A DNA stretch of 63,191 bases, counting the filler, from Octopus bimaculoides (lineage: Eukaryota), in NCBI RefSeq assembly GCF_001194135.2. It is 6 parts of 6 records of this genome, joined end to end, with 100 filler letters (N's around TTAATTAATTAA, not from the genome) between each part and the next. Parts side by side here need not be neighbours in the genome. Positions count along the whole stretch, not along the records: positions 12,646 to 27,713 come from NC_069003.1; 5 more parts are not named here. One strand, 5' to 3'. Position 1 is the first letter of the stretch. Each line of letters opens with the position of its first letter. Below the pieces are notes generated by a model, which was not told where the DNA came from, made no database searches, and saw nothing but the letters and a program-made list of their open reading frames with translations. Shown here piece after piece: positions 3,323 through 26,349 of this stretch. The translations under genes and the position numbers were made by a program.

Positions 3323-6300
3323 TATATAGCCCATTGTACAGGCTGCAGATACTTATGGCAGAAAGCATTTTGGAAGACATAAATAAACATCAACTGCTTC
3401 GGTAAAAGAAAATGTGGTATAATATAGGCAAACAACAAATAGTGAGCATGTTTAGTATTTATGACTCTTCCCAAGTTTAACAGTATGTTATTCATTTTAA
3501 CAATTTAAATAATGTGCTTGTGCATGAATAGTATTATTTCAATTAAATAATATTTACTTCTGGAATAGTAGGAAAGAAAATCAGTTGTTTATTGTTGTTG
3601 TTTTTTTTCAAATTTATGATTATGTCACTGTATTCATGTATGTTGTAACTGCATGTGTGATCGTTTGTATGAGAAGACGGACAACATATTGAATTATGTC
3701 TGGGCATAATAACCTTTATGATTAAATCTGATTTACTTTCAAGACTGCAGATATAATCTTCAGACGGACGATGATAGATTTTAGTTATATTTGAGCAACC
3801 GGGATTTAATACGCCTGTCTATGAATGACAAATTAAGACGTAGATGATAAACAAACAGCTCTGATCGGATACTTTGTTGTCGATGTAGCCATTGTCTAGG
3901 AGTAGATACAATGCAAACTATTCGTTTCGGCAGCGTGAACATTCTTGCAGTAACTCATATTAGTGCATAATAAACCTTACAACACTTCAGAATATGATTG
4001 TTTATAAAATGATTCACATGAATGGATCATCACAAATACAAGGACTAAATCAATAGTTATTATATTATTATTGCTTTCATTTCATTTTTAAACAATTTTT
4101 TCCGTTATTAAAGATGTTTCCCTTTTTAGAAATGAGATACTATTTGTAAAGTGGTAAACGTTAATTGATGGTGTATCTGGGAAACTATGCGCAATGCCCA
4201 GAAACAATGCACCTTTATATTAAATATCCCCCAAATGTTGAATTGTTCATTATATTTATTCCACTGAACAATTCTCTCTTCTTTCTATGAACAATTGAGA
4301 ATTTAGCTGAAAACTCCTCATTTATTAACTCACATAAGGTGGCCTTTTGGTATGTTTCATGTAGTGGTTAAAGTTCTTCAAATCACAGTCTACATCGTCC
4401 TAGATATACAAACGAATGAAATTGTCAGTTAGAAGCATTTTCTCATAGTTTTTCTCATTTGCCAGGACAACAAAAGTTACATATCCTTTTTCTCAAAGAA
4501 AATACATCTCTCAGTTCTTATTAACGCCACCAACTCTGTTATTCATACTGCACTCTAGACCTCGACTTTGGGCTTTCGCGTATGCCATCTTCATTCATCC
4601 GTCTTCTTTCACTTAGATATCATCTTCTTTCACTTGGATATAAAACAACAAGAACGTCTAGTTATACGTGCGTAAGCTTTCAATCACTCCCTCACACAAA
4701 TTCATCAACTACACTCTTCAAAACTTTTCGCTGCACCAACAAAGGTTTTATCACCTCTCGTTTACCATAGATGGCATTTATGGAAGGTCTCCGTTCATCA
4801 CATTCTAAAATTCATATATTTCTTTCACCGTTCTCAAAATCTTCCCAAGTATCAAGATCTTCTCAAGTGCTCAGCCATTTCTCTTAATGTATTGATGATA
4901 TTTGTATTATTTCAGCTTTCTCTGAATTATTGGTCTTCAATGACATAGCTACTCACATTGAAAGTCTTTCGAGTACCATTTGCAGCTATGCTGCTTTTGC
5001 GTAAGTAAGAATTGTGCATTTTTTAAATTTCTTTTGTAAGAATTAACACTCACCTCACATGTAGTGTGAATTTCAGGTTGCGAGTTTTAATTCTCTCAAC
5101 AAATGTCCTACTTTTTGCTTTGATTTTCAACGGAAAGCGATAAATCGACAAACAAATCTCAAATGTTTATATTATGCATGTTCCTGATTATTAGTTATGC
5201 GGGTCTCTTTTTACGGAAATATTACAAACCCATACTATACAAGCCTTACTGTGTTTCGATACAACACTATAAAGCTCCTAGTTTCAAATGCCACCAAAGA
5301 ATTTCACCTTCAGTTCCTCTGAGGTGGTTGGATTAAATAAGTAACAATTATTTACCTATATCAATGTAATGGATTTCTTACAACTTGTGTCCTTCTTAGA
5401 AGGAGAGCAATTGTAAGCAACATTTATTCTGTATCTTGCAGCATAAACTTGTGATTAATTTTGTCTTCAATTAACTCTAAGTGATATAATTCTGTATATA
5501 TAGGCATATCATTTGACAAATAATTAACGTGCTCACTATGAGTTTTAACACTGGTATCCATCCAATGTGTCGAGTAATATATATGACGCAAACGTGACGG
5601 GAAATTGAAAATGATGCTGTTCGAAACAGAAAAGCAGAAAACATGAAGTTAATGTGTGATCTACAAGTTAGGTATTTGGCTTGCAATCATAATTATGGAC
5701 TGAGTGGTGCGTTGTGATTTAAAGCACATCGCTTTATTTCACGTTGCTCCAGACTAATTAATTTTATATAAGTACTAGATGGATGCTTGTGCGTCTCTTT
5801 CCCTCCAGCTCTTATATCCAAATCAATTAGTTTTAGTATGGTATATGCCGCGAAAGCATACTTGCTCTCGGGTGATAGCTAATAGTACTAATGTACCCTA
5901 ATAAGCAGTTAATACTGCAAACCTCGCCATATTAATTAGTCGTTTGTTAATATTAATCCGATAACATTGACAGAAATGGGATAACATGAAAACGATTTAG
6001 TTTCATTGTTTTACTTTATGAGTTCGAATTTCACACGTCTGTGTTGGATTTTAATTCTTAAGCAATTCTTATAACGTATAATATATTTTATATATTATAC
6101 ATATAATATTTTCCTGTGTATATATATATTTTATAATGGCATATTTCAAGTAGTACTTGCAATAAATAATATTGGAGACCTATGATTAAAATATCAATCA
6201 ATGTCTCACTATTATATTATGGAACTAAATTCAAGTGAGTATTCCCCTTCACCTAAAGAGGCAGAAAATTAGTGCACATAGACAGCACATGCATAATTTT

Positions 6301-13443: not shown

Positions 13444-14104
13444 AACTCGTTGATGTAATTATTGTCATCGTCATAATCATCGTTTTCATTATTTATCGTT
13501 TTTTATCGAGTTTCCTGTTCTTTTTAGTTTTGTCATAATCGTCGTCGTCGCACAATATTCTTTTGCAGTTGTTTTTTTTTCTTTCTAGCGTAGTTTTCTT
13601 TCTTTTTTCACTGTTTGCGTATTTTGTCTTTGTTGTTGTTATTGTCGCCGTCGTCTTTTTTTTGTTGTTTTTTAAAGTTGTCATGTGTGTCTTATAATAA
13701 TAATGGTTCCGAAGATTTTGGCAGATAACGTCTACAGCTGTCTGTGAGGTAACGTCCGTCAACCGCGAATAGAAACAGCTACAACAACAACAACAACAGC
13801 GACGACAGAAAGAACAGAAACAAACAGGAGCAACAAGAAAATAAATAAAAGAAATTCGCAACTTCAACTTTAGCGACAACAGCAACAACATCAACATCAA
13901 CGGGGACATCAACGAGAACAAGAACAACGACAATTGGACAGATACCGTCATCCGTGTCAACAACGACAACAAAAGTACCAACAACAGCACAAAGGAAAAA
14001 AAAACAGAAGTTGAAATAAAAACACAACAACAACGTAATAATATCAACAAGGATAAAAGGATATCATCATTATCATCATCACCAACATCATCGACAACAA
14101 CGGC

Positions 14105-14302
14105 ACGATCGAGCCCTCTTCATGGACGCTTGACTGCCTAGAAATAGCAGCGAAAAAAACTTCCTCGAAGAATATCGTATACAGACTTTACAAGGAACAA
14201 ACAAAATAATACAAGACGGGATTGTGACGGCTAGAACACCTGATCATAGTCCTTCCTGCTAAATCGGGACTGACCTGGTGCTAAACAACAACAACAACAA
14301 CA
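14105..14302 (+). mobile_element. SINE-like family F with an (AAC)n tail; related pieces about 17745-17845 (+), 21557-21655 (-), 22110-22480 (+), 8470-8520 (-)
   Basis: Recurrent motifs TAGAAATAGCAGC, GACGGGATGGTCACG and CTGACCTGG..CTAAACAACAAC occur in several copies. Confidence 0.7.
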
Positions 14303-14500
14303 ATATCTACAGGGTGACCACAGCCACTAACAACAACGACGACATAAAAAATACAACAATAATAACAACAAAAATAATAACAATACCCATATAAAAAAAA
14401 GCAATAAAAAGCGCCAACAACATCAAGAAGAATATTCGTATTAAATTACAGCAACGGCAACAACAACAATATTGATATATAAAAGCAATAACTACAACTC

Positions 14501-14571
<71 letters not shown>

Positions 14572-14723
14572 ACTACTACTACTGCTACTACCACTTCATA
14601 AAAAACAATTGTTGAAAGACATCAGTACCTTAGAACTACAACATCAACAACTACGTTTATNNNNNNNNNNNNNNNNNNNNNNNNNNNNNNNNNNNNNNNN
14701 NNNNNNNNNNNNNNNNNNNNNNN

Positions 14724-14762
<39 letters not shown>

Positions 14763-14924
14763 ACTACTACTACTGATATTACAATAATACTATACTGCTA
14801 CTGTTACTACTACGATATCAGAGGGATATAACATCTTCAACGAAAACAACATTAACAGCAACAACAAAAACAAAAGCAACAACAACAATAATAGCGAGAA
14901 AAGTAAAAGAGAAAGGAAGAGAGA

Positions 14925-14966
<42 letters not shown>

Positions 14967-15910
14967 GTGAGAGAGAGGAAGAGAGAGAGAGATAGAGAGA
15001 GAGAGAGACTGAGGGACAGACAGACCGGTGGTGGTGAACGCTGACAACAAACTGACCGGTGAATTAAGGTGGACAGTGCCTTCAGTGTGTCACAGCGGGG
15101 CAGCGTGGTGGGGGGCAGTGGGAGAGGAAGCATAGAACATCATCATCATCATCATTATCATCATCGACATCATCAGCAGCAGCTGTAGCAGTAACAGCAC
15201 TTGCAGCAAGCACGAGCATCACCTACAGCAGCAGCATCAGCGGCGTCACCTGAAGCAGTAATATTGCTTTCATCATTAACAAAGTCACCAACTTCACCGC
15301 CGCCACCACCACCACCACCAGCAGCAACAGTGACAGCGACATCATCAACATCATCACCACCACCACCACCAACATCAACAGCAGCACTATCTTGTCGTCA
15401 GCATCACCATCGACATCGCCAAAGGCAGCAACATCCACATTTATTAGCAGCAGCAGTAACATCGTTTCCATCAACCGCTTTCGCTGGAGAACAACATTAA
15501 CAACGACAAGTAGCGCCACCATCACCACCATCATAACCAACAACAACAACAACAACAACAGCAACAACAACAGTAGGGGCTGCAAAATCAGCTGCAAAGG
15601 AAGAAGGAGAGGGTAGAGAAAGATACATGCGAAGAGAAACGAGAGGGGCAGGAGGTAGAGAGGAGGAGGAGAAGTGAGTGGTAGTGGTGGTCGTGGCTGT
15701 GGTGGTGGTGGTGGTGGTGGTGGTGGTTGTATTGGCGGTGGTGGTGGTAGTGGTGTTTGTGGTGGTTGTGGTGTTGGAAGTAGTGAGGGGTGGGAACTCA
15801 AGTGGACGCGACAGAAAGGAGTTGCTCTGCTGCGGGGGAGCGAGAAGAAGAGTTCGCCGTGTAACAACAACAATAACAACAACAGCAACACATACTACCA
15901 CTACTACTAT

Positions 15911-15955
<45 letters not shown>

Positions 15956-16075
15956 CTCTGTAAAATAAAAATAACAATACCAACATCTGTAACAACAACA
16001 ACAGCATCATAACCACAGTTATGCCAAACTAAAAAGAAAAATACTTACTACTACTAATAATAATAATAAGAATAA

Positions 16076-16108
<33 letters not shown>

Positions 16109-16879
16109 CACTACAATAACAATATCAATACCATCAACAACAATAATAAGTATAATCTCAATAATACCTACATAGCAACAACAATAGTAACGAGAATTGC
16201 GGCCAACGTCAGTGACAACAACAACAGCGACAAACAGTTATTTCAACAACAACAACAGCAGCAGCAGCAGCGATAACAAAAAAAAACACAAACAAAAATA
16301 CAGCGGTTGTTGTAACAACAACGATATAGTTATTATAGCCATCATCATCATCATCATCATCATCACAAACGACATAGAAATAGAGAAGGTGACAGCGAGG
16401 GTGGCGCCAACAACAGTAACAACAACAACAATTATAACATAAAGAATAGCAGTGACAAGTGACATCGCAAAAGGAGCAGCAGCAGCAGTGAAGCATGAGG
16501 CAACAACAACAACAACAATAAAAACAACTACAGTGGTAGTAGTAGTAGAAGAAGAAGAAGAAGAAGAAGAAGTAGAGGACAACGCAACAAAAACAAGCGT
16601 GTTGACGACACCATCAGCAGCAGCAGCAGTAACGTCGGGGGTAATAGCAACAACAACCACAAAGAACATCAGATATAGTTGAAACAGTGACAGCAGTGAC
16701 AACAACAACAAGAAGAAGCACTACACTAAGTGTAGCAACAACGGCGGTGCGTCTGTCACCACTACTGCTGCTACTGCTGTTGCTGCAGCGGTGACAACAA
16801 TAACAACTACAAAAACAACAAGAGAAACTTAGCACGACCATAGAATTGGCAGGAAATAACGGCGGGTGACATCACAACG

Positions 16880-16918
<39 letters not shown>

Positions 16919-18134
16919 CAAGCGACAACAACTTTATTAGGAGTTGCAGTAAGCAACAGGTGTGACAATATCACCCTCAGCACCTGTAGCAGTCGTAGGG
17001 ACAGCAGCAACCAACAGCAGCGACTAATAAGCAATAACAACAACGGCAGCGACAACAGCAACAGCAGCAGCAGCAGCAGCAGTAACGGACCAATCAAGCA
17101 GCGGTTTTAGAAATTGTTCCTACCTTTCTACCACCACCACCACCACCACCACCACCATCACTTCACCCCTCTTCTTTATACCACTGAGTATAACATCAAC
17201 CCCCACCGCCTCTATCAACAACAACAACAACAACATACTTTGAACATCACAACCAACAACACCACCTCATCTAACATACAACCAATAACAACATCAGCAA
17301 ATAACAATACACTTCCCTCCATCGTTTCGACGGTCAAAAAAAATACCTACTTCACCACCAACAACCACAAGACAACACTAACATTTTAAAACAACCACAA
17401 CAACAATAGCCGAAACAATAAGAGCAACACTACTAGTACCGACACTGTCTAAAATACCTTCAGCGCCATTCGCCTTCTCACCGTAACACCAACACCACCA
17501 CCAACACCACCACCACCAAAATCAATACTACAAGAGTGTATATATTTGTATATATAACAACAATAACAACAACACAACAATAGCATAACAGGACATCTAT
17601 AACGTGACAACAACAACAATAACAACAATACTGCCTTGCTCAGCACTAAGCTGACGGTGGTGGCAAAACAATAACAATAACAATAACAGTTGTATCAATA
17701 TTAAGAACATAAACCAAGAACAATCCACTTGGTCCTCTGATCTGCTGGCAATAACACTTCCAAAATAACGGGATGGTCACGACAGGAATACTTTTTAACT
17801 GTATATTTGCGCAGTCAGAGATGACCTCGGGTTAAACAACAATAGCGATCATATCGATAACACTAACAGCAATAACAATAATAGCAACAACAACAACAAC
17901 AGCAACAATAACAACAACAATAACAACAACAATAACAACAACAATAACAACAAAGACATCTCCCTTCGAACTCCCACGCCACCCACATTTATAACAAAAT
18001 TTGTAACAACGCCATCATCATCACCACAATCATCTAAACACCACAATCAACAACAACAAGTGTGACACCTGTAAAAAGTACCATCATTAGCACAATAATC
18101 ATCACTTAACAATCTGTAACGTAAACGTCATCAA

Positions 18135-18169
<35 letters not shown>

Positions 18170-18350
18170 CCGTCACAGGCAGCATCACCTTTTCTATATT
18201 TTCCCTCTCACCACAGCCCCTTTATTTTTTCCTTACTCCGCCGCCTCCTTTCTTTTCTTCAACCTCCCCCTCCGCCTCTTTTTCTTCGCACACCCCCTCC
18301 ACCCTCCCCCTATTACTACGACAAACGGTGCCACCATCACGCCTTTCTTG

Positions 18351-18384
<34 letters not shown>

Positions 18385-18757
18385 TTGATCGTCCTCCTCC
18401 TCCTCATCGTCGTCATCGTTATCAACCCCTCAATCATCATCATCACTATCATCATCATCACTATCATCATCATCACTATCACCATCATCAACAATATCGC
18501 CGCCGTCGCCATTACCACTTCTACAATAACAACAACAGCCACAACAACAACAACGAAAACAAAAACAACTGCAGCAGAACTTGCAGCAACAGCGGCAACA
18601 AGTGCAACGAAAGTAGCAACAACATCAACAACAATACCAACAACAGTAGCAACAGCAACAACAATAATAATAACAACTGCAAAAACAACACCTGCAACAA
18701 CCACTGCAACAAAAGCAACAACAGCTGCAACAACAACCACAACAAAAGCAACAATAG

Positions 18758-19861
18758 CAGCTGCAACAGCAGCAACAACTGCATCCACAAGCTGCAAAAA
18801 TACCGGCACCAAGACGAACACCAGCAACAACCCTCACAGTCACAATAACTCCTCCGCCGGCCCCACCACTAACACCCACATCACCACTACCTACAAGCAC
18901 AACTATAGCAACAACAACTTCAACTACAACAACAACAACAGCAGCAGCTTCTGCTGCTGCTGCTGCTGCTGTTGCAGCCAAATCAGCAGCCTCGTCGGCG
19001 TCAGCATCATTATCAACAACAGCTCGGAGATTATCGTCAGCCGTTCCGCTAGATTTTTCCTCGTTGTCTTCATCGCTTTCCACCTCGGTTCAGTCCTTAT
19101 CGCCTCGACAACCACCACGGAAGCGGGGCCGAAGCCCACGCCCGAGTCCCAAACCAAGCCCGAAACCAAGCCGGCTTCTTCGTCACCATCATCAGCAAAA
19201 ACACAAGTCACCAGCGGCATCACCATCATCATCGTTATCATCGGCGATACCACAACTGTTTTCGCAGGCAGCGGCGGCGTTAAAAAGTGTACCTTCGTCA
19301 GTTTCCTCGTCGCAATTGAAACCGTCGACACCACCACCAAAGGGAGTACGAACGCCTACACAGAATCGGAAAACAACAACGATAGTTCTTCTCCAGCCGT
19401 CGGTACAGACAAAGCAACAGCCACCACCGTCACCACGCCGACTCTCACAAACACAATTACAGCCACCGTCGCCCTCTCCACGCCGCTTATCAGACACACA
19501 ATTGCAACAACCAGCGTCCTTTCCACGCCGTTTATCACAAACGCAACTTCAACAACCACCGCCGCCGTCACCACGACGCTTATCACAAACACAACTACAG
19601 CCCCCATCGCCCTCCCCACGCCGACTATCAGACACACAGCTACAACAACCGCCGGCCTCGCCACGCCGCCTGTCGCAAACACAACTCCAACCACAACAGT
19701 GGCCGCAAGCGAGCCCACGGCCAAGCCCAACGTGTCCCGTTTCGCCCACTCCATTTGCGGCATCGCCTCCCTCTTCATCGGCACCTTCTTCTCCGCCGCC
19801 TTCTCCACCTTCACCGCGATGTTGTGAGTGTTTCGGTTGTGGTAGTGTTCTGACGAGGAGA
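18758..19861 (+). CDS. Putative in-frame N-terminal extension of the SCYL2-like exon (Q/T/A/S/P-rich, six SPRRLS(Q/D)TQL repeats, Cys cluster)
   Basis: Stop-free from 18758 into ATG 19862 in the same frame as ORF 19064..20188. Repeat variation is almost purely synonymous. No in-frame ATG and no clear splice acceptor, so the 5' boundary is unknown. Confidence 0.55.
19415..19687 (+). repeat. Coding tandem repeat: six 45-48-nt units (15,15,15,16,15,15 aa) arranged ABC-ABC
   Basis: QQPPPSPRRLSQTQL / QPPSPSPRRLSDTQL / QQPASFPRRLSQTQL / QQPPPPSPRRLSQTQL / QPPSPSPRRLSDTQL / QQPPASPRRLSQTQL. Confidence 0.9.
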
Positions 19862-20011
19862 ATGGAAGTTTTATCCATGCTAAAATTGTCCTTAAACACT
19901 GACAATATTAATCCTATAACAAAATATTATGATATAGGCAAACAGGTCGGCAGTGCAGGACCAGAAATGGTATGGAAGATTTTCGATGCAGTGCGCCTTG
20001 AGGACAAAAGA
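19862..20011 (+). CDS. SCYL2: SCY1-like protein 2 family (SCYL2/CVAK104-like) pseudokinase, exon encoding the conserved N-terminus (50 codons, phase-0 donor)
   Basis: MEVLSMLKLSLNTDNINPITKYYDIGKQVGSAGPEMVWKIFDAVRLEDKR resembles the SCYL2 N-lobe (human, from memory: NPVTREFDVGRHIASGGNGLAWKIFNG). It ends at a canonical AGA|GTAAGT donor. Orthologue versus paralogue is unresolved. Confidence 0.85.
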
Positions 20012-20017
20012 GTAAGT
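20012..20017 (+). promoter_or_regulatory. 5' splice donor GTAAGT
   Basis: Perfect consensus, located exactly where protein similarity ends. Confidence 0.85.
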
Positions 20018-20209
20018 ACATATTTTAGCTTTTGTTTCCTTCTCCCTTATTCCTTCCAAATATTTTTATATCAGTTGTGTTGGTTCATAATGCTGTTGTA
20101 TTTTTCATTCGCTCTCCCAGTCTATATAACGATATCTAAGCGAGGCGCAAAACTGCAAATATTGGGCGGTGTGGAAAGGGGAAAGTAGTTTTTCCCTAAT
20201 ATTCTGTTG

Positions 20210-20440
20210 AAGTTCATCGAGGTCGGTTTTGCCTTTTATCCTTTCAGAGTCGGTAAAATGTGTACCAGTCGTGTACTGGAGTCGATGTAATGACCAAACC
20301 CCTCCCTCAAAATTTCAAGTTTTGTTTCTATAGCAAAAAGGGTTATTCATCTTTTCAGGGTCGATGAATTAAGAACCAGTTGTACACAGAGGTCGATGTT
20401 TAGCCCCTGCCCCAAAATTGCTAACCTTGCGCCGAAAATC
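20210..20440 (+). mobile_element. SINE family C, partial and partly duplicated
   Basis: GAGGTCGGTTTTGCCTTTTATCCTTTCAGAGTCGGTAAAA core, with a second CATCTTTTCAGGGTCGATG piece about 100 nt downstream. Confidence 0.75.
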
Positions 20441-20483: not shown

Positions 20484-23247
20484 TGAGATCTAGTATGCTT
20501 TATAACAATATTTAACACGCTTTTTAGCCTCCAGTATTGCACTGGTACTTTATTTTTGTCGACCCTTCAGAAGGTTATTTGTCACATGTTTACAAGAAAA
20601 AGAAAAAAANNNNNNNNNNNNNNNNNNNNNNNNNNNNNNNNNNNNNNNNNNNNNNNNNNNNNNNNNNNNNNNNNNNNNNNNNNNNNNNNNNNNNNNNNNN
20701 NNNNNNNNNNNNNNNNNNNNNNNNNNNNNNNNNNNNNNNNNNNNNNNNNNNNNNNNNNNNNNNNNNNNNNNNNNNNNNNNNNNNNNNNNNNNNNNNNNNN
20801 NNNNNNNNNNNNNNNNNNNNNNNNNNNNNNNNNNNNNNNNNNNNNNNNNNNNNNNNNNNNNNNNNNNNNNNNNNNNNNNNNNNNNNNNNNNNNNNNNNNN
20901 NNNNNNNNNNNNNNNNNNNNNNNNNNNNNNNNNNNNNNNNNNNNNNNNNNNNNNNNNNNNNNNNNNNNNNNNNNNNNNNNNNNNNNNNNNNNNNNNNNNN
21001 NNNNNNNNNNNNNNNNNNNNNNNNNNNNNNNNNNNNNNNNNNNNNNNNNNNNNNNNNNNNNNNNNNNNNNNNNNNNNNNNNNNNNNNNNNNNNNNNNNNN
21101 NNNNNNNNNNNNNNNNNNNNNNNNNNNNNNNNNNNNNNNNNNNNNNNNNNNNNNNNNNNNNNNNNNNNNNNNNNNNNNNNNNNNNNNNNNNNNNNNNNNN
21201 NNNNNNNNNNNNNNNNNNNNNNNNNNNNNNNNNNNNNNNNNNNNNNNNNNNNNNNNNNNNNNNNNNNNNNNNGGCTGTGCTGCTGCTGTTGTTATAACCA
21301 GTGTTATTGTAGCTGTGGTTTCTGCTGGGGAAGTAGATTGGCAAAAATCATTAGAGAAATAGTTGGAAACACTGCTTCCGGTTCCTTTCCGGGCTGAGTT
21401 CAAATGCTACCCAACTCAATTTTGCCCTTCATCCTTTCAGTGCAGATAAAATAACGTAGCAATCTTCTACAGAGATCGATTTAATCTCTTACCACCACCA
21501 CCACCCTGCACACACATCTCTCACTTCCTAAAAATAAAAAAAGACATTTATTGTAATTGCTGTTGTTGTTGTTGCTTAACTCCCGGTCAGACGCGGTCGA
21601 GCTGACCAATGACCAAAGGTATTACAGTTGTGACCATCCCGTCTTTTATTTCCCTGTGATCACGGAAAGGATAAACCGGCAACCATTTAATTCCTGGGTG
21701 CTTTTTCCAAGACAGTGGGTATCGGAGGGGGGAGATTAGGTTACTATTTCTAGCCGGTATGTGTGTCTCAGTTGTTGGTTCGAGATGAGGCGTGACTTTA
21801 ATTGAAATTCTGCAATGCTACCTACATTTGACAAAATGTGTGGGGGGTGGGGGACATGTTCCTAATAATTTTCACTCAGCTTGTTAGAAATAGCAGCTAA
21901 ATCTCCCTCAAACTCATGTATTATTCTCTTCAAAGAAAATTAAACAGGCAGGACACATTGTGGAAGAGACAGCCTCACATACGCGGTGATCACAGTGGAA
22001 CGCATTTGCGTCGGGTGAAAGGGTGTGGTGCTAAGCTTAACCACCATCGCCACCACCGCTGCCATCAGCAATAACAAACATCAGCAACGAGCAAATGAGG
22101 GAACCTCTATGTGGTCGCTCTGCATGCTAAAAATAGCAGCTAATTTCCTCCATTCAAATCACATACTAGTGTCTTTGATAAAAACATGTTGAATGTCGTA
22201 GTCATATGTTAGGATGGTCACGGCTGGAAAGTCTTTAGTCCTGGAGTTTTGTCGATTAAACAATAATGAATAATAATTATCAACACTATTGAATCAAAGA
22301 AGTAGCTTCTATGTGGTTGATCAACCTGCTAGAAATAACAGGTAAATATGCCTCAAACTTCACAATGTCATTTAAAATATGAAAGGGTAGAAAATAAGGC
22401 GAGACGGCTATGGCTGGGACCATTTTGATGGTAAGTCTTTCTGTCAGTTCAGGTCTGACCTGCTTCTAAACAACAACCTGCACTTTCACTAACAACAACC
22501 ACAGCTACAATAACAAGAAGAACACTAACATCTCCACCAACACTATCACCGCCTCCGTTACGAGCAAAAACAACATTTGCAACAACAACAACAACAACAC
22601 GCACAACAGCACTAACAAATGCTACATCTACACCACAAGCAATAACAAGTGCAACAACAACAACTACTACTACTACTACTACTATATGTCCATATCCCAC
22701 TGTTAAGTAACAGACCATATGTCGATGTTTGACAGAAAGGCAATAAAAGTAGATGAAATTGTTACAAATTGGAAAATTTTTCTGGTGGACATGCTGGATT
22801 AGTAAACGCCACACCGGATTAAGTGACTTAATTATTTAATTATCTCCCTTTACATTCAGAGTTCAAATATTGTTGCCGATAAGCAAAGAAGTAGGATTAA
22901 TAAAATAAGCTCACACCTTTAGCAATAAATTAAATTTGTAGTCTTGTGCCTATATTCAAAGTCATATGTGTATATATATATGGGGGTTTTGTAAATTCGA
23001 TATCGTTTCCATTTCTTTTTCTCTTGCGGCTCTTAATGCTTTTTCTTCTCATTAATGAATTATATGATCCAAACTGTTAGATGTTCTTCATGTTCCTCGT
23101 ATTACTGTATTTATTTTCATTCTTGCTGTTTCGCCTCGTAATTCCGAGCTTTTTGATCACCACTTTTACTCCTCTACCTCCTTATATATTTCTTTATTCA
23201 TACTTCGTAATCTCCCTAAGTCTAATGTGTGTGTTTGTGTGTGTGTA

Positions 23248-23289
<42 letters not shown>

Positions 23290-23394
23290 TGTGTTAATGC
23301 TTTTTATGTGAAATTGTACATAAAAGCAATTGACCATTACTCAATACGGTTTAGTAACTGCATGTTTATCAACTGTTTCAAAGAAAAGGTTGAT

Positions 23395-23468: not shown

Positions 23469-23511
23469 GCCAAGCCTTTTCTTGTAAAAGTTACTCTGTG
23501 CATATGTCTGT

Positions 23512-23625
<114 letters not shown>

Positions 23626-23727
23626 ATGTGCGTGTATGTGTGTGTATCATTTATTCAATTTCTCAGTAAGCACTGAAATATTTTCTATTTTGTAACCTAT
23701 TCCATTAACCCCCCACTTTATTCGTCG

Positions 23728-23780
23728 CCTTTGTCGCTACCTGACCCTTTGTCGCTACCTGACCCTTTGTCGCTACCTGA
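23728..23780. repeat. 18-bp tandem repeat x3 (CCTTTGTCGCTACCTGAC)
   Basis: Read directly; the third unit is 17 nt. Confidence 0.95.
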
Positions 23781-25596: not shown

Positions 25597-26349
25597 NNNN
25601 NNNNNNNNNNNNNNNNNNNNNNNNNNNNNNNNNNNNNNNNNNNNNNNNNNNNNNNNNNNNNNNNNNNNNNNNNNNNNNNNNNNNNNNNNNNNNNNNNNNN
25701 NNNNNNNNNNNNNNNNNNNNNNNNNNNNNNNNNNNNNNNNNNNNNNNNNNNNNNNNNNNNNNNNNNNNNNNNNNNNNNNNNNNNNNNNNNNNNNNNNNNN
25801 NNNNNNNNNNNNNNNNNNNNNNNNNNNNNNNNNNNNNNNNNNNNNNNNNNNNNNNNNNNNNNNNNNNNNNNNNNNNNNNNNNNNNNNNNNNNNNNNNNNN
25901 NNNNNNNNNNNNNNNNNNNNNNNNNNNNNNNNNNNNNNNNNNNNNNNNNNNNNNNNNNNNNNNNNNNNNNNNNNNNNNNNNNNNNNNNNNNNNNNNNNNN
26001 NNNNNNNNNNNNNNNNNNNNNNNNNNNNNNNNNNNNNNNNNNNNNNNNNNNNNNNNNNNNNNNNNNNNNNNNNNNNNNNNNNNNNNNNNNNNNNNNNNNN
26101 NNNNNNNNNNNNNNNNNNNNNNNNNNNNNNNNNNNNNNNNNNNNNNNNNNNNNNNNNNNNNNNNNNNNNNNNNNNNNNNNNNNNNNNNNNNNNNNNNNNN
26201 NNNNNNNNNTTTCCATTTCTTTTAGAGAGACGTTGTCATCTGCTGGTATTGATACATCAATTAGAAAGCATTTTTTTCTTCATGATCTTTGACAACTATA
26301 TCTGGTCTATTTGCCTTAATTTCTCTATCTTATTATTATTATTATTATA

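Follow-up and report, generated by a model that had tools for sequence, protein, structure and literature searches.

A tandem repeat array under peptide-level purifying selection, probably part of a lineage-specific N-terminal extension of SCYL2 in Octopus bimaculoides

Upstream of the start codon of a SCYL2 gene in Octopus bimaculoides lies a short tandem array whose units, read in the frame of that start codon, spell SPRRLS(Q/D)TQL, which raises the question of whether the array encodes protein and, if so, as part of which gene. The array lies on the NC_069003.1 part of the window, by which we mean the whole 63,191-nucleotide stretch of DNA that was analysed. A first-pass annotation had proposed that the six repeats carry a protein-selection signature and belong to an unannotated N-terminal extension of the SCYL2-family protein. 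The two features on which the question turns are the following.

19415 to 19687, + strand: six tandem units of the putative coding repeat array, encoding QQPPPSPRRLSQTQL-type repeats
19862 to 20011, + strand: conserved coding part of SCYL2 exon 1, 50 codons, MEVLSMLK...EDKR

The identity of the downstream feature is well defined. The 50 codons from ATG 19862 read MEVLSMLKLSLNTDNINPITKYYDIGKQVGSAGPEMVWKIFDAVRLEDKR and are closed by the donor GTAAGT at 20012-20017, and the ATG itself stands in a strong Kozak context, with A at -3 and G at +4. The segment matches fragments that JGI names SCY1-like protein 2 as well as the SCYL2 N-termini of many invertebrates, including a Biomphalaria glabrata UniProt entry, is 60-67% identical to the RefSeq SCY1-like protein 2 of Pomacea canaliculata, and carries the SCYL2 N-terminal signature M[ED]VLSM...NPIT...G.Q.GSAGPEMVWKI.... 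These sequence matches identify ATG 19862, previously described as a SCYL2-like start, with the conserved N-terminal Met of SCYL2. A Pfam search of the Pomacea orthologue found Pkinase. Exon 1 is the only SCYL2 exon found within the NC_069003.1 piece.

The intron that follows contains long (TG)n microsatellites at 23226-23294 and 23505-23645, which have similar counterparts 3′ of exon 1 in the related locus L005 (10645-10779 and 14436-14584). A perfect 18-nt tandem repeat, CCTTTGTCGCTACCTGAC, is present in 2.9 copies at 23728-23780, and within 20200-20400 a motif like that of a short interspersed repeat (…gtcgat…gtaccagt…ggagtcgatgtaatgac…) occurs twice, presumably resembling octopus SINEs. 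Runs of N at 14661-14723, 20610-21272 and 25597-26209 are assembly gaps, and open reading frames that span them are artefactual.

The array is read in the frame of ATG 19862 (frame 2, position mod 3 = 2). Its six units, on the + strand, are 15 residues long in the typical case.

Unit 1, from 19415, 45 nt: QQPPPSPRRLSQTQL
Unit 2, from 19460, 45 nt: QPPSPSPRRLSDTQL
Unit 3, from 19505, 45 nt: QQPASFPRRLSQTQL
Unit 4, from 19550, 48 nt: QQPPPPSPRRLSQTQL
Unit 5, from 19598, 45 nt: QPPSPSPRRLSDTQL
Unit 6, from 19643, 45 nt: QQPPASPRRLSQTQL

Tandem Repeats Finder recovered the same periodicity (period 45, 5.8 copies, 72% matches, 19433-19694) and detected a higher-order repeat of 138 nt present in 1.9 copies (81%); units 1-3 and 4-6 form a duplicated three-unit block (blocks A and B). 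The consensus core is SPRRLS[Q/D]TQL, and the array as a whole is basic and rich in Pro, Ser and Gln (P 24%, Q 22%, S 15%, R 13%). Two further features in the same frame lie upstream of it.

19025 to 19036, + strand: seventh, isolated RRLS motif, about 130 codons upstream of the array
19133 to 19171, + strand: SPRPSPKPSPKPS mini-repeat, by direct reading

The copies of SPRPSPKPSPKPS (AGC/AGT, CCA/CCC/CCG) vary for the most part at the third codon position of frame 2. Tryptic peptides predicted from the extension are LSQTQLQPPSPSPR, LSDTQLQQPASFPR, LSQTQLQQPPPPSPR and LSDTQLQQPPASPR.

The codon-aligned units bear out every codon-level detail that had been claimed for them. The first Ser codon of units 1-6 is TCA, TCT, TTT, TCA, TCC and TCG, which includes the single ttt exception, and the second Arg codon is CGA, CGC, CGT, CGC, CGA and CGC; one Leu of the core is encoded by CTC, TTA, CTA or CTG and the other by TTA, TTG, CTT, CTA or CTC, and never by TTY. 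The sole length change in the array, the extra CCG of unit 4, is one whole codon, again as had been stated. Across the 30-nt core the variable columns fall 3/1/9 at codon positions 1/2/3. Blocks A and B differ at 26 nucleotides, distributed 7/1/18 by codon position, and at no more than 3 of 45 residues. Of the seven changes at first positions, five swap CTN and TTR codons for Leu and are therefore synonymous. A dN/dS comparison between units had been suggested at the outset, and we computed it by the Nei-Gojobori method as pN/pS between the two blocks, which is 0.08 (sd 21.5, nd 4.5). When 26 random substitutions were simulated 200,000 times, the mean number of residue changes was 16.8 and the minimum 7, and no simulation reached three or fewer.

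Other frames give a different picture. The array has pN/pS values of 0.65 and 9.9 in the other two + frames and of 0.51, 0.26 and 9.4 in the three - frames. The frame-1 open reading frame at 18328-19827 was rejected as the coding frame of the array, since array pN/pS there is 0.65-0.89, in line with the earlier remark that the other long + frame alters residues. Antisense open reading frames over the array were likewise rejected, since their pN/pS is higher and the one with shared wobble positions (pN/pS 0.26) runs into a TGA that had been placed near 19549 and lies at 19549-19551. The low pN/pS, the failure of any simulation to match it and the broken antisense frame together mean that the array clearly evolved under purifying selection on its peptide, in the frame of the SCYL2 start, so that the protein-selection signature stands. 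The divergence between blocks at synonymous sites (pS 0.57) indicates that this selection was long-lasting. The signal is a within-gene one, detectable without any second genome.

These results bear directly on the simplest alternative, in which the array is a non-coding minisatellite of the promoter or 5′ UTR and its codon pattern reflects chance, nucleotide constraint or an antisense frame. The upstream 6 kb are indeed microsatellite-rich and non-coding, and composition alone suffices to keep two of the three + frames open. However, a synonymous excess that none of the 200,000 simulations reproduced, five Leu changes that are all CTN/TTR synonymous swaps, and a wobble-sharing antisense frame that carries a stop and has a pN/pS three times higher argue against it. 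The minisatellite explanation is already strongly disfavoured, and we regard it as very improbable.

The array lies within two wider features.

18761 to 19861, + strand: open frame upstream of the conserved Met, 367 codons, mod 3 = 2, lacking ATG
19000 to 19800, strand not assigned: CpG-island-like stretch, GC 0.51-0.65, CpG observed/expected 1.2-1.7, including the array

The open frame is limited at its 5′ end by TAG at 18758-18760 and, as had been claimed, runs from the array into ATG 19862 and beyond with no stop. It is rich in Pro, Ser, Gln and Thr (P 19%, S 18%, Q 11%, T 11%), and its 367 codons contain 0 stops compared with 5.95 expected from dinucleotide shuffles (P=0.002), while the stretch 19688-19861 taken alone is free of stops with a probability of 0.42 in shuffles. 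Openness alone is weak evidence, because the strand is C/A-rich and frame 1 is open as well. That second frame spans 18328-19827 on the + strand (499 codons) and encodes a Thr/Ile-rich sequence, mucin-like in appearance, with a hydrophobic C-terminal tail. A Pfam search of the window's 416 residues returned no domain match, and per-phase nucleotide entropy was uninformative for the 5′ limit of coding periodicity. The CpG-island-like stretch is likely to mark the promoter and 5′ end of the gene. Farther upstream, 5-6 kb of imperfect CA-rich trinucleotide microsatellites (CAA, CAT, ACT, CAG, TCA and others) precede position 18950 or thereabouts, about 5 kb of them at 13800-18950; they are strand-asymmetric and have stops in every frame.

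A further feature lies immediately before the conserved Met.

19820 to 19840, + strand: Cys cluster CCECFGC, in frame with the conserved Met and 7 codons upstream of it

The position of this cluster is common to other mollusc SCYL2 N-terminal extensions, and a tblastn alignment of Pomacea XP_025110543.1 begins at 19817 and passes through the cluster into exon 1. In 36 orthologue fragments, the 20 in-frame residues that lead up to the conserved Met contain 11.8% Cys, and a Cys-rich run is found in almost all fragments whose open reading frame extends upstream. The residues that precede the Met are as follows.

Pomacea and Biomphalaria: CRPWTCT-M
Locus L004 (about 3971-4009): MSCGCSAKLCT-M
Loci L001 and L005 (L001 1062-1100): GCTECRGCHHLLCK-M
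Loci L022 and L023 (1501-1614): KTCGKCSFLHCSSLTRS-M
The window: RCCECFGCGSVLTRR-M

In annotated gastropod SCYL2 proteins the start precedes the conserved Met by 29 and 56 residues. Between L001 and L005, pN/pS is 0.25 over the 68 extension codons from a conserved upstream ATG, and the only indel inside the extension is a single one of 3 nt, with indels of 4, 2 and 1 nt upstream of the ATG. Between L022 and L023, pN/pS is 0.20 over 38 extension codons from a conserved ATG, at which DNA similarity ends. These two pairs of closely related species (pN/pS 0.20-0.25) show that the 'canonical' Met of mollusc SCYL2, which corresponds to the vertebrate start, is internal and that a short Cys-rich N-terminal extension is coding, which affects gene models. 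Our literature search on SCYL2 N-terminal extensions returned nothing relevant. Several orthologues begin with MCC..., MGC... or MSCGC..., like N-terminal or Cys-string palmitoylation motifs, a resemblance that would fit a membrane- or vesicle-associated protein. The Cys-rich segment may be a lipid-anchoring motif absent from vertebrate SCYL2.

The Cys cluster also bears on the proposal that the array is an exon of another transcript, either of an upstream or overlapping gene or of an alternative SCYL2 isoform, which would exit through GTGAGT at 19824-19829 and bypass ATG 19862. That hexamer fits the donor consensus, and the window holds no start codon for the extension. On the other hand, GTGAGT is made up by the codons TGT GAG TGT (Cys-Glu-Cys) and is absent at the matching place in L001 and L005, the frame runs into exon 1 with no stop, and the extension has no homologue in any other gene family. 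We consider such a transcript quite improbable.

A difficulty for an N-terminal extension is the missing start codon. From the stop at 18758-18760 to 19862 no ATG stands in frame, and frame 2 has none from about 13703 to 19861, whereas all relatives examined have an in-frame ATG 13-68 codons upstream. The + strand has no ATG in any frame from 17824 to 19818 (0 versus about 11 in dinucleotide shuffles), and the only other + strand ATG within 2 kb lies about 40 nt before the conserved one.

19819 to 19827, + strand: ATG TTG TGA, two-codon open reading frame, out of frame, inside the Cys codons

Counterparts of this start-stop are ATG CAC TGA in L001 and L005 (L001 1061-1069) and ATGTGA in L003. 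A+TGY Cys codons may be enough to account for it; alternatively, should the region be a leader, it may act as a start-stop element. The first-pass proposal of an N-terminal extension is upheld in part: mollusc SCYL2 genes do code upstream of the Met, as judged by the Cys cluster, by RefSeq and UniProt models and by the pN/pS of the two species pairs, while a simple open reading frame begun by an upstream ATG is excluded in the window.

For want of an in-frame ATG, the array could be translated only by way of a coding exon farther upstream or from a non-AUG codon. Among the near-cognate codons upstream of the array, the best candidates are ACG 19379 (A at -3) and ATA 19382 (A at -3, G at +4), and CTG 19256 has a poor context; as candidate starts they are unconvincing. 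Pattern matching alone points to two candidate acceptors, 19094 and 19196, each of them in phase with frame 2, and pairing upstream ATGs and GT donors with them yielded no consistent exon model. A spliced upstream exon explains the missing ATG equally well as non-AUG initiation, and with its missing ATG the locus is a useful test case for either non-AUG initiation or unannotated 5′ coding exons.

Loss of the start would account for the same facts differently. In this scenario the array once coded within an ATG-initiated SCYL2 extension whose upstream start was lost in the lineage, and today it would lie untranslated in a 5′ leader within a CpG island, with translation beginning at ATG 19862. 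The lack of an in-frame upstream ATG, the strong context of ATG 19862 (which could be the sole start used today) and the position of the array in a CpG island typical of a promoter and 5′ leader are all consistent with this, as is a mild depletion of ATG over 18960-19818 (0 versus 2.8 expected, P=0.04) of the kind that a leader would show. However, frame 2 is intact over 367 codons, the Cys cluster conserved among molluscs would have to be untranslated too, and the long selection implied by the divergence of the blocks would require the loss to be recent. Both the loss of the upstream start and the present role as a CpG-island leader seem unlikely to us.

We searched for the array in other sequences. 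Neither blastn nor tblastn of the extension found it at the loci L001-L005 of four other taxa. The conserved ATG is the exact point from which these loci resemble the window, save for the Cys cluster, which can be aligned weakly. That they lack the array is weak evidence, because the nearest relatives, with synonymous sites saturated relative to the window (pS 0.79-1.0), are more diverged from it than the array blocks are from each other. An exhaustive HMMER search of 1.84 billion representative proteins found no relative with the array, and a word-indexed protein search with the 331-residue extension found no match, although low-complexity words possibly swamped that search. When metagenome contigs were scanned with a degenerate DNA pattern of the core, the 15 matches were all isolated chance ones, and no array was among them.

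The HMMER matches to the array, namely the bacterial protein P0005 and phage or bacterial RGRLSWTEFEVP repeats, were set aside as convergent repeats. The best of them, P0005, is a bacterial metagenome protein (E 7e-28) that shares with the array a 15-residue period and an identical RLSQTQ core. Unlike the octopus array, it comprises about 25 tandem copies of PAPTSGDTRLSQTQI (L006 8359-10575), its gene lies on a bacterial contig next to genes for glycosyltransferase, PHO4 and helicase, and it has no similarity to the window outside the repeat; the resemblance looks like convergence and not homology. The octopus array is most readily regarded as a gain specific to its lineage.

Given the in-frame Cys cluster, the selection signature of the array and the uninterrupted frame, the best reading is that the array is coding sequence within a long, disordered, lineage-specific N-terminal extension of SCYL2, which we hold to be fairly probable. 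A 15-codon unit was first duplicated in tandem, and a block of three units was duplicated in turn; the resulting array has since stayed under purifying selection on SPRRLS(Q/D)TQL. On this reading it would sit in a Pro/Ser/Gln/Arg-rich extension, upstream of the mollusc-shared Cys cluster and the pseudokinase domain, translated from a start outside the contiguous open reading frame, either the ATG of an upstream spliced exon or a non-AUG codon.

What the repeated peptide might do can be approached from its motifs. By direct reading, SPRR is found in 5/6 units and RRLS in 6/6, SQ in 4/6, SD in 2/6 and TQ in 6/6. By established consensus, S-P-R-R would suit proline-directed kinases (S/T-P-x-K/R) and SQ/TQ would suit PIKK kinases. 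R-R-L-S agrees with the consensus of basophilic kinases such as PKA, CaMK and AMPK, and the combination of R at -3 and L at +4 also resembles the AMPK/MARK pattern. A CDK/PKA/ATM reading of the array would be pattern matching only. An ancestral RRxS site in the extensions of other orthologues was considered and is unsupported, RRxS being not enriched there (5 observed versus 2.5 expected).

The repeated motif of the extension may be a multivalent short linear motif, most plausibly one of R-R-x-S or S-P-x-R phosphosites or docking sites, which would tune the membrane or clathrin association of SCYL2, with the Cys cluster as a possible palmitoylation site. Taken to its full extent, this would be a SCYL2 with an extension of at least 150 residues that lacks its own AUG, owing to non-AUG initiation or a novel 5′ coding exon, and in which the array is a new multisite phospho-switch beside a palmitoylatable Cys cluster, a version that we regard as doubtful. 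If true, a clathrin-trafficking pseudokinase would have acquired a lineage-specific regulatory module. Disordered regions otherwise often show repeat expansions confined to one lineage; the array, if translated, would be a clean example of a trafficking pseudokinase gaining a disordered module by tandem duplication.

The organisation proposed here resembles three known systems in different respects. The gastropod SCYL2 extensions (Pomacea XP_025110543.1 and Biomphalaria A0A2C9JL58) are, like the putative octopus extension, coding sequence in frame upstream of the MEVLSM/MDVLSM Met, with a Cys cluster just before it (CRPWTCT versus CCECFGC) and a basic, Ser-rich composition. Unlike it, they are short (29-56 residues), start with ATG and lack tandem repeats, whereas the window has a 367-codon open frame devoid of ATG and a six-unit array. 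PTEN-L, FGF2 and MYC have non-AUG-initiated N-terminal extensions that were recognised by conservation upstream of the annotated AUG. As in these genes, a selection signature precedes a well-conserved AUG in the window, and neither an AUG nor a stop is found in frame there; it differs from them in that no conserved near-cognate start was identified and the extension has no cross-species alignment. Finally, the KSP repeats of neurofilament-H and the CTD heptads of RNA polymerase II are, like the array, tandem Pro/Ser-rich kinase-site units in which the peptide motif is conserved across copies. The octopus array is unlike these in having six copies only, in lying at the N-terminus of a pseudokinase trafficking protein, and in that its kinase sites are consensus matches only.
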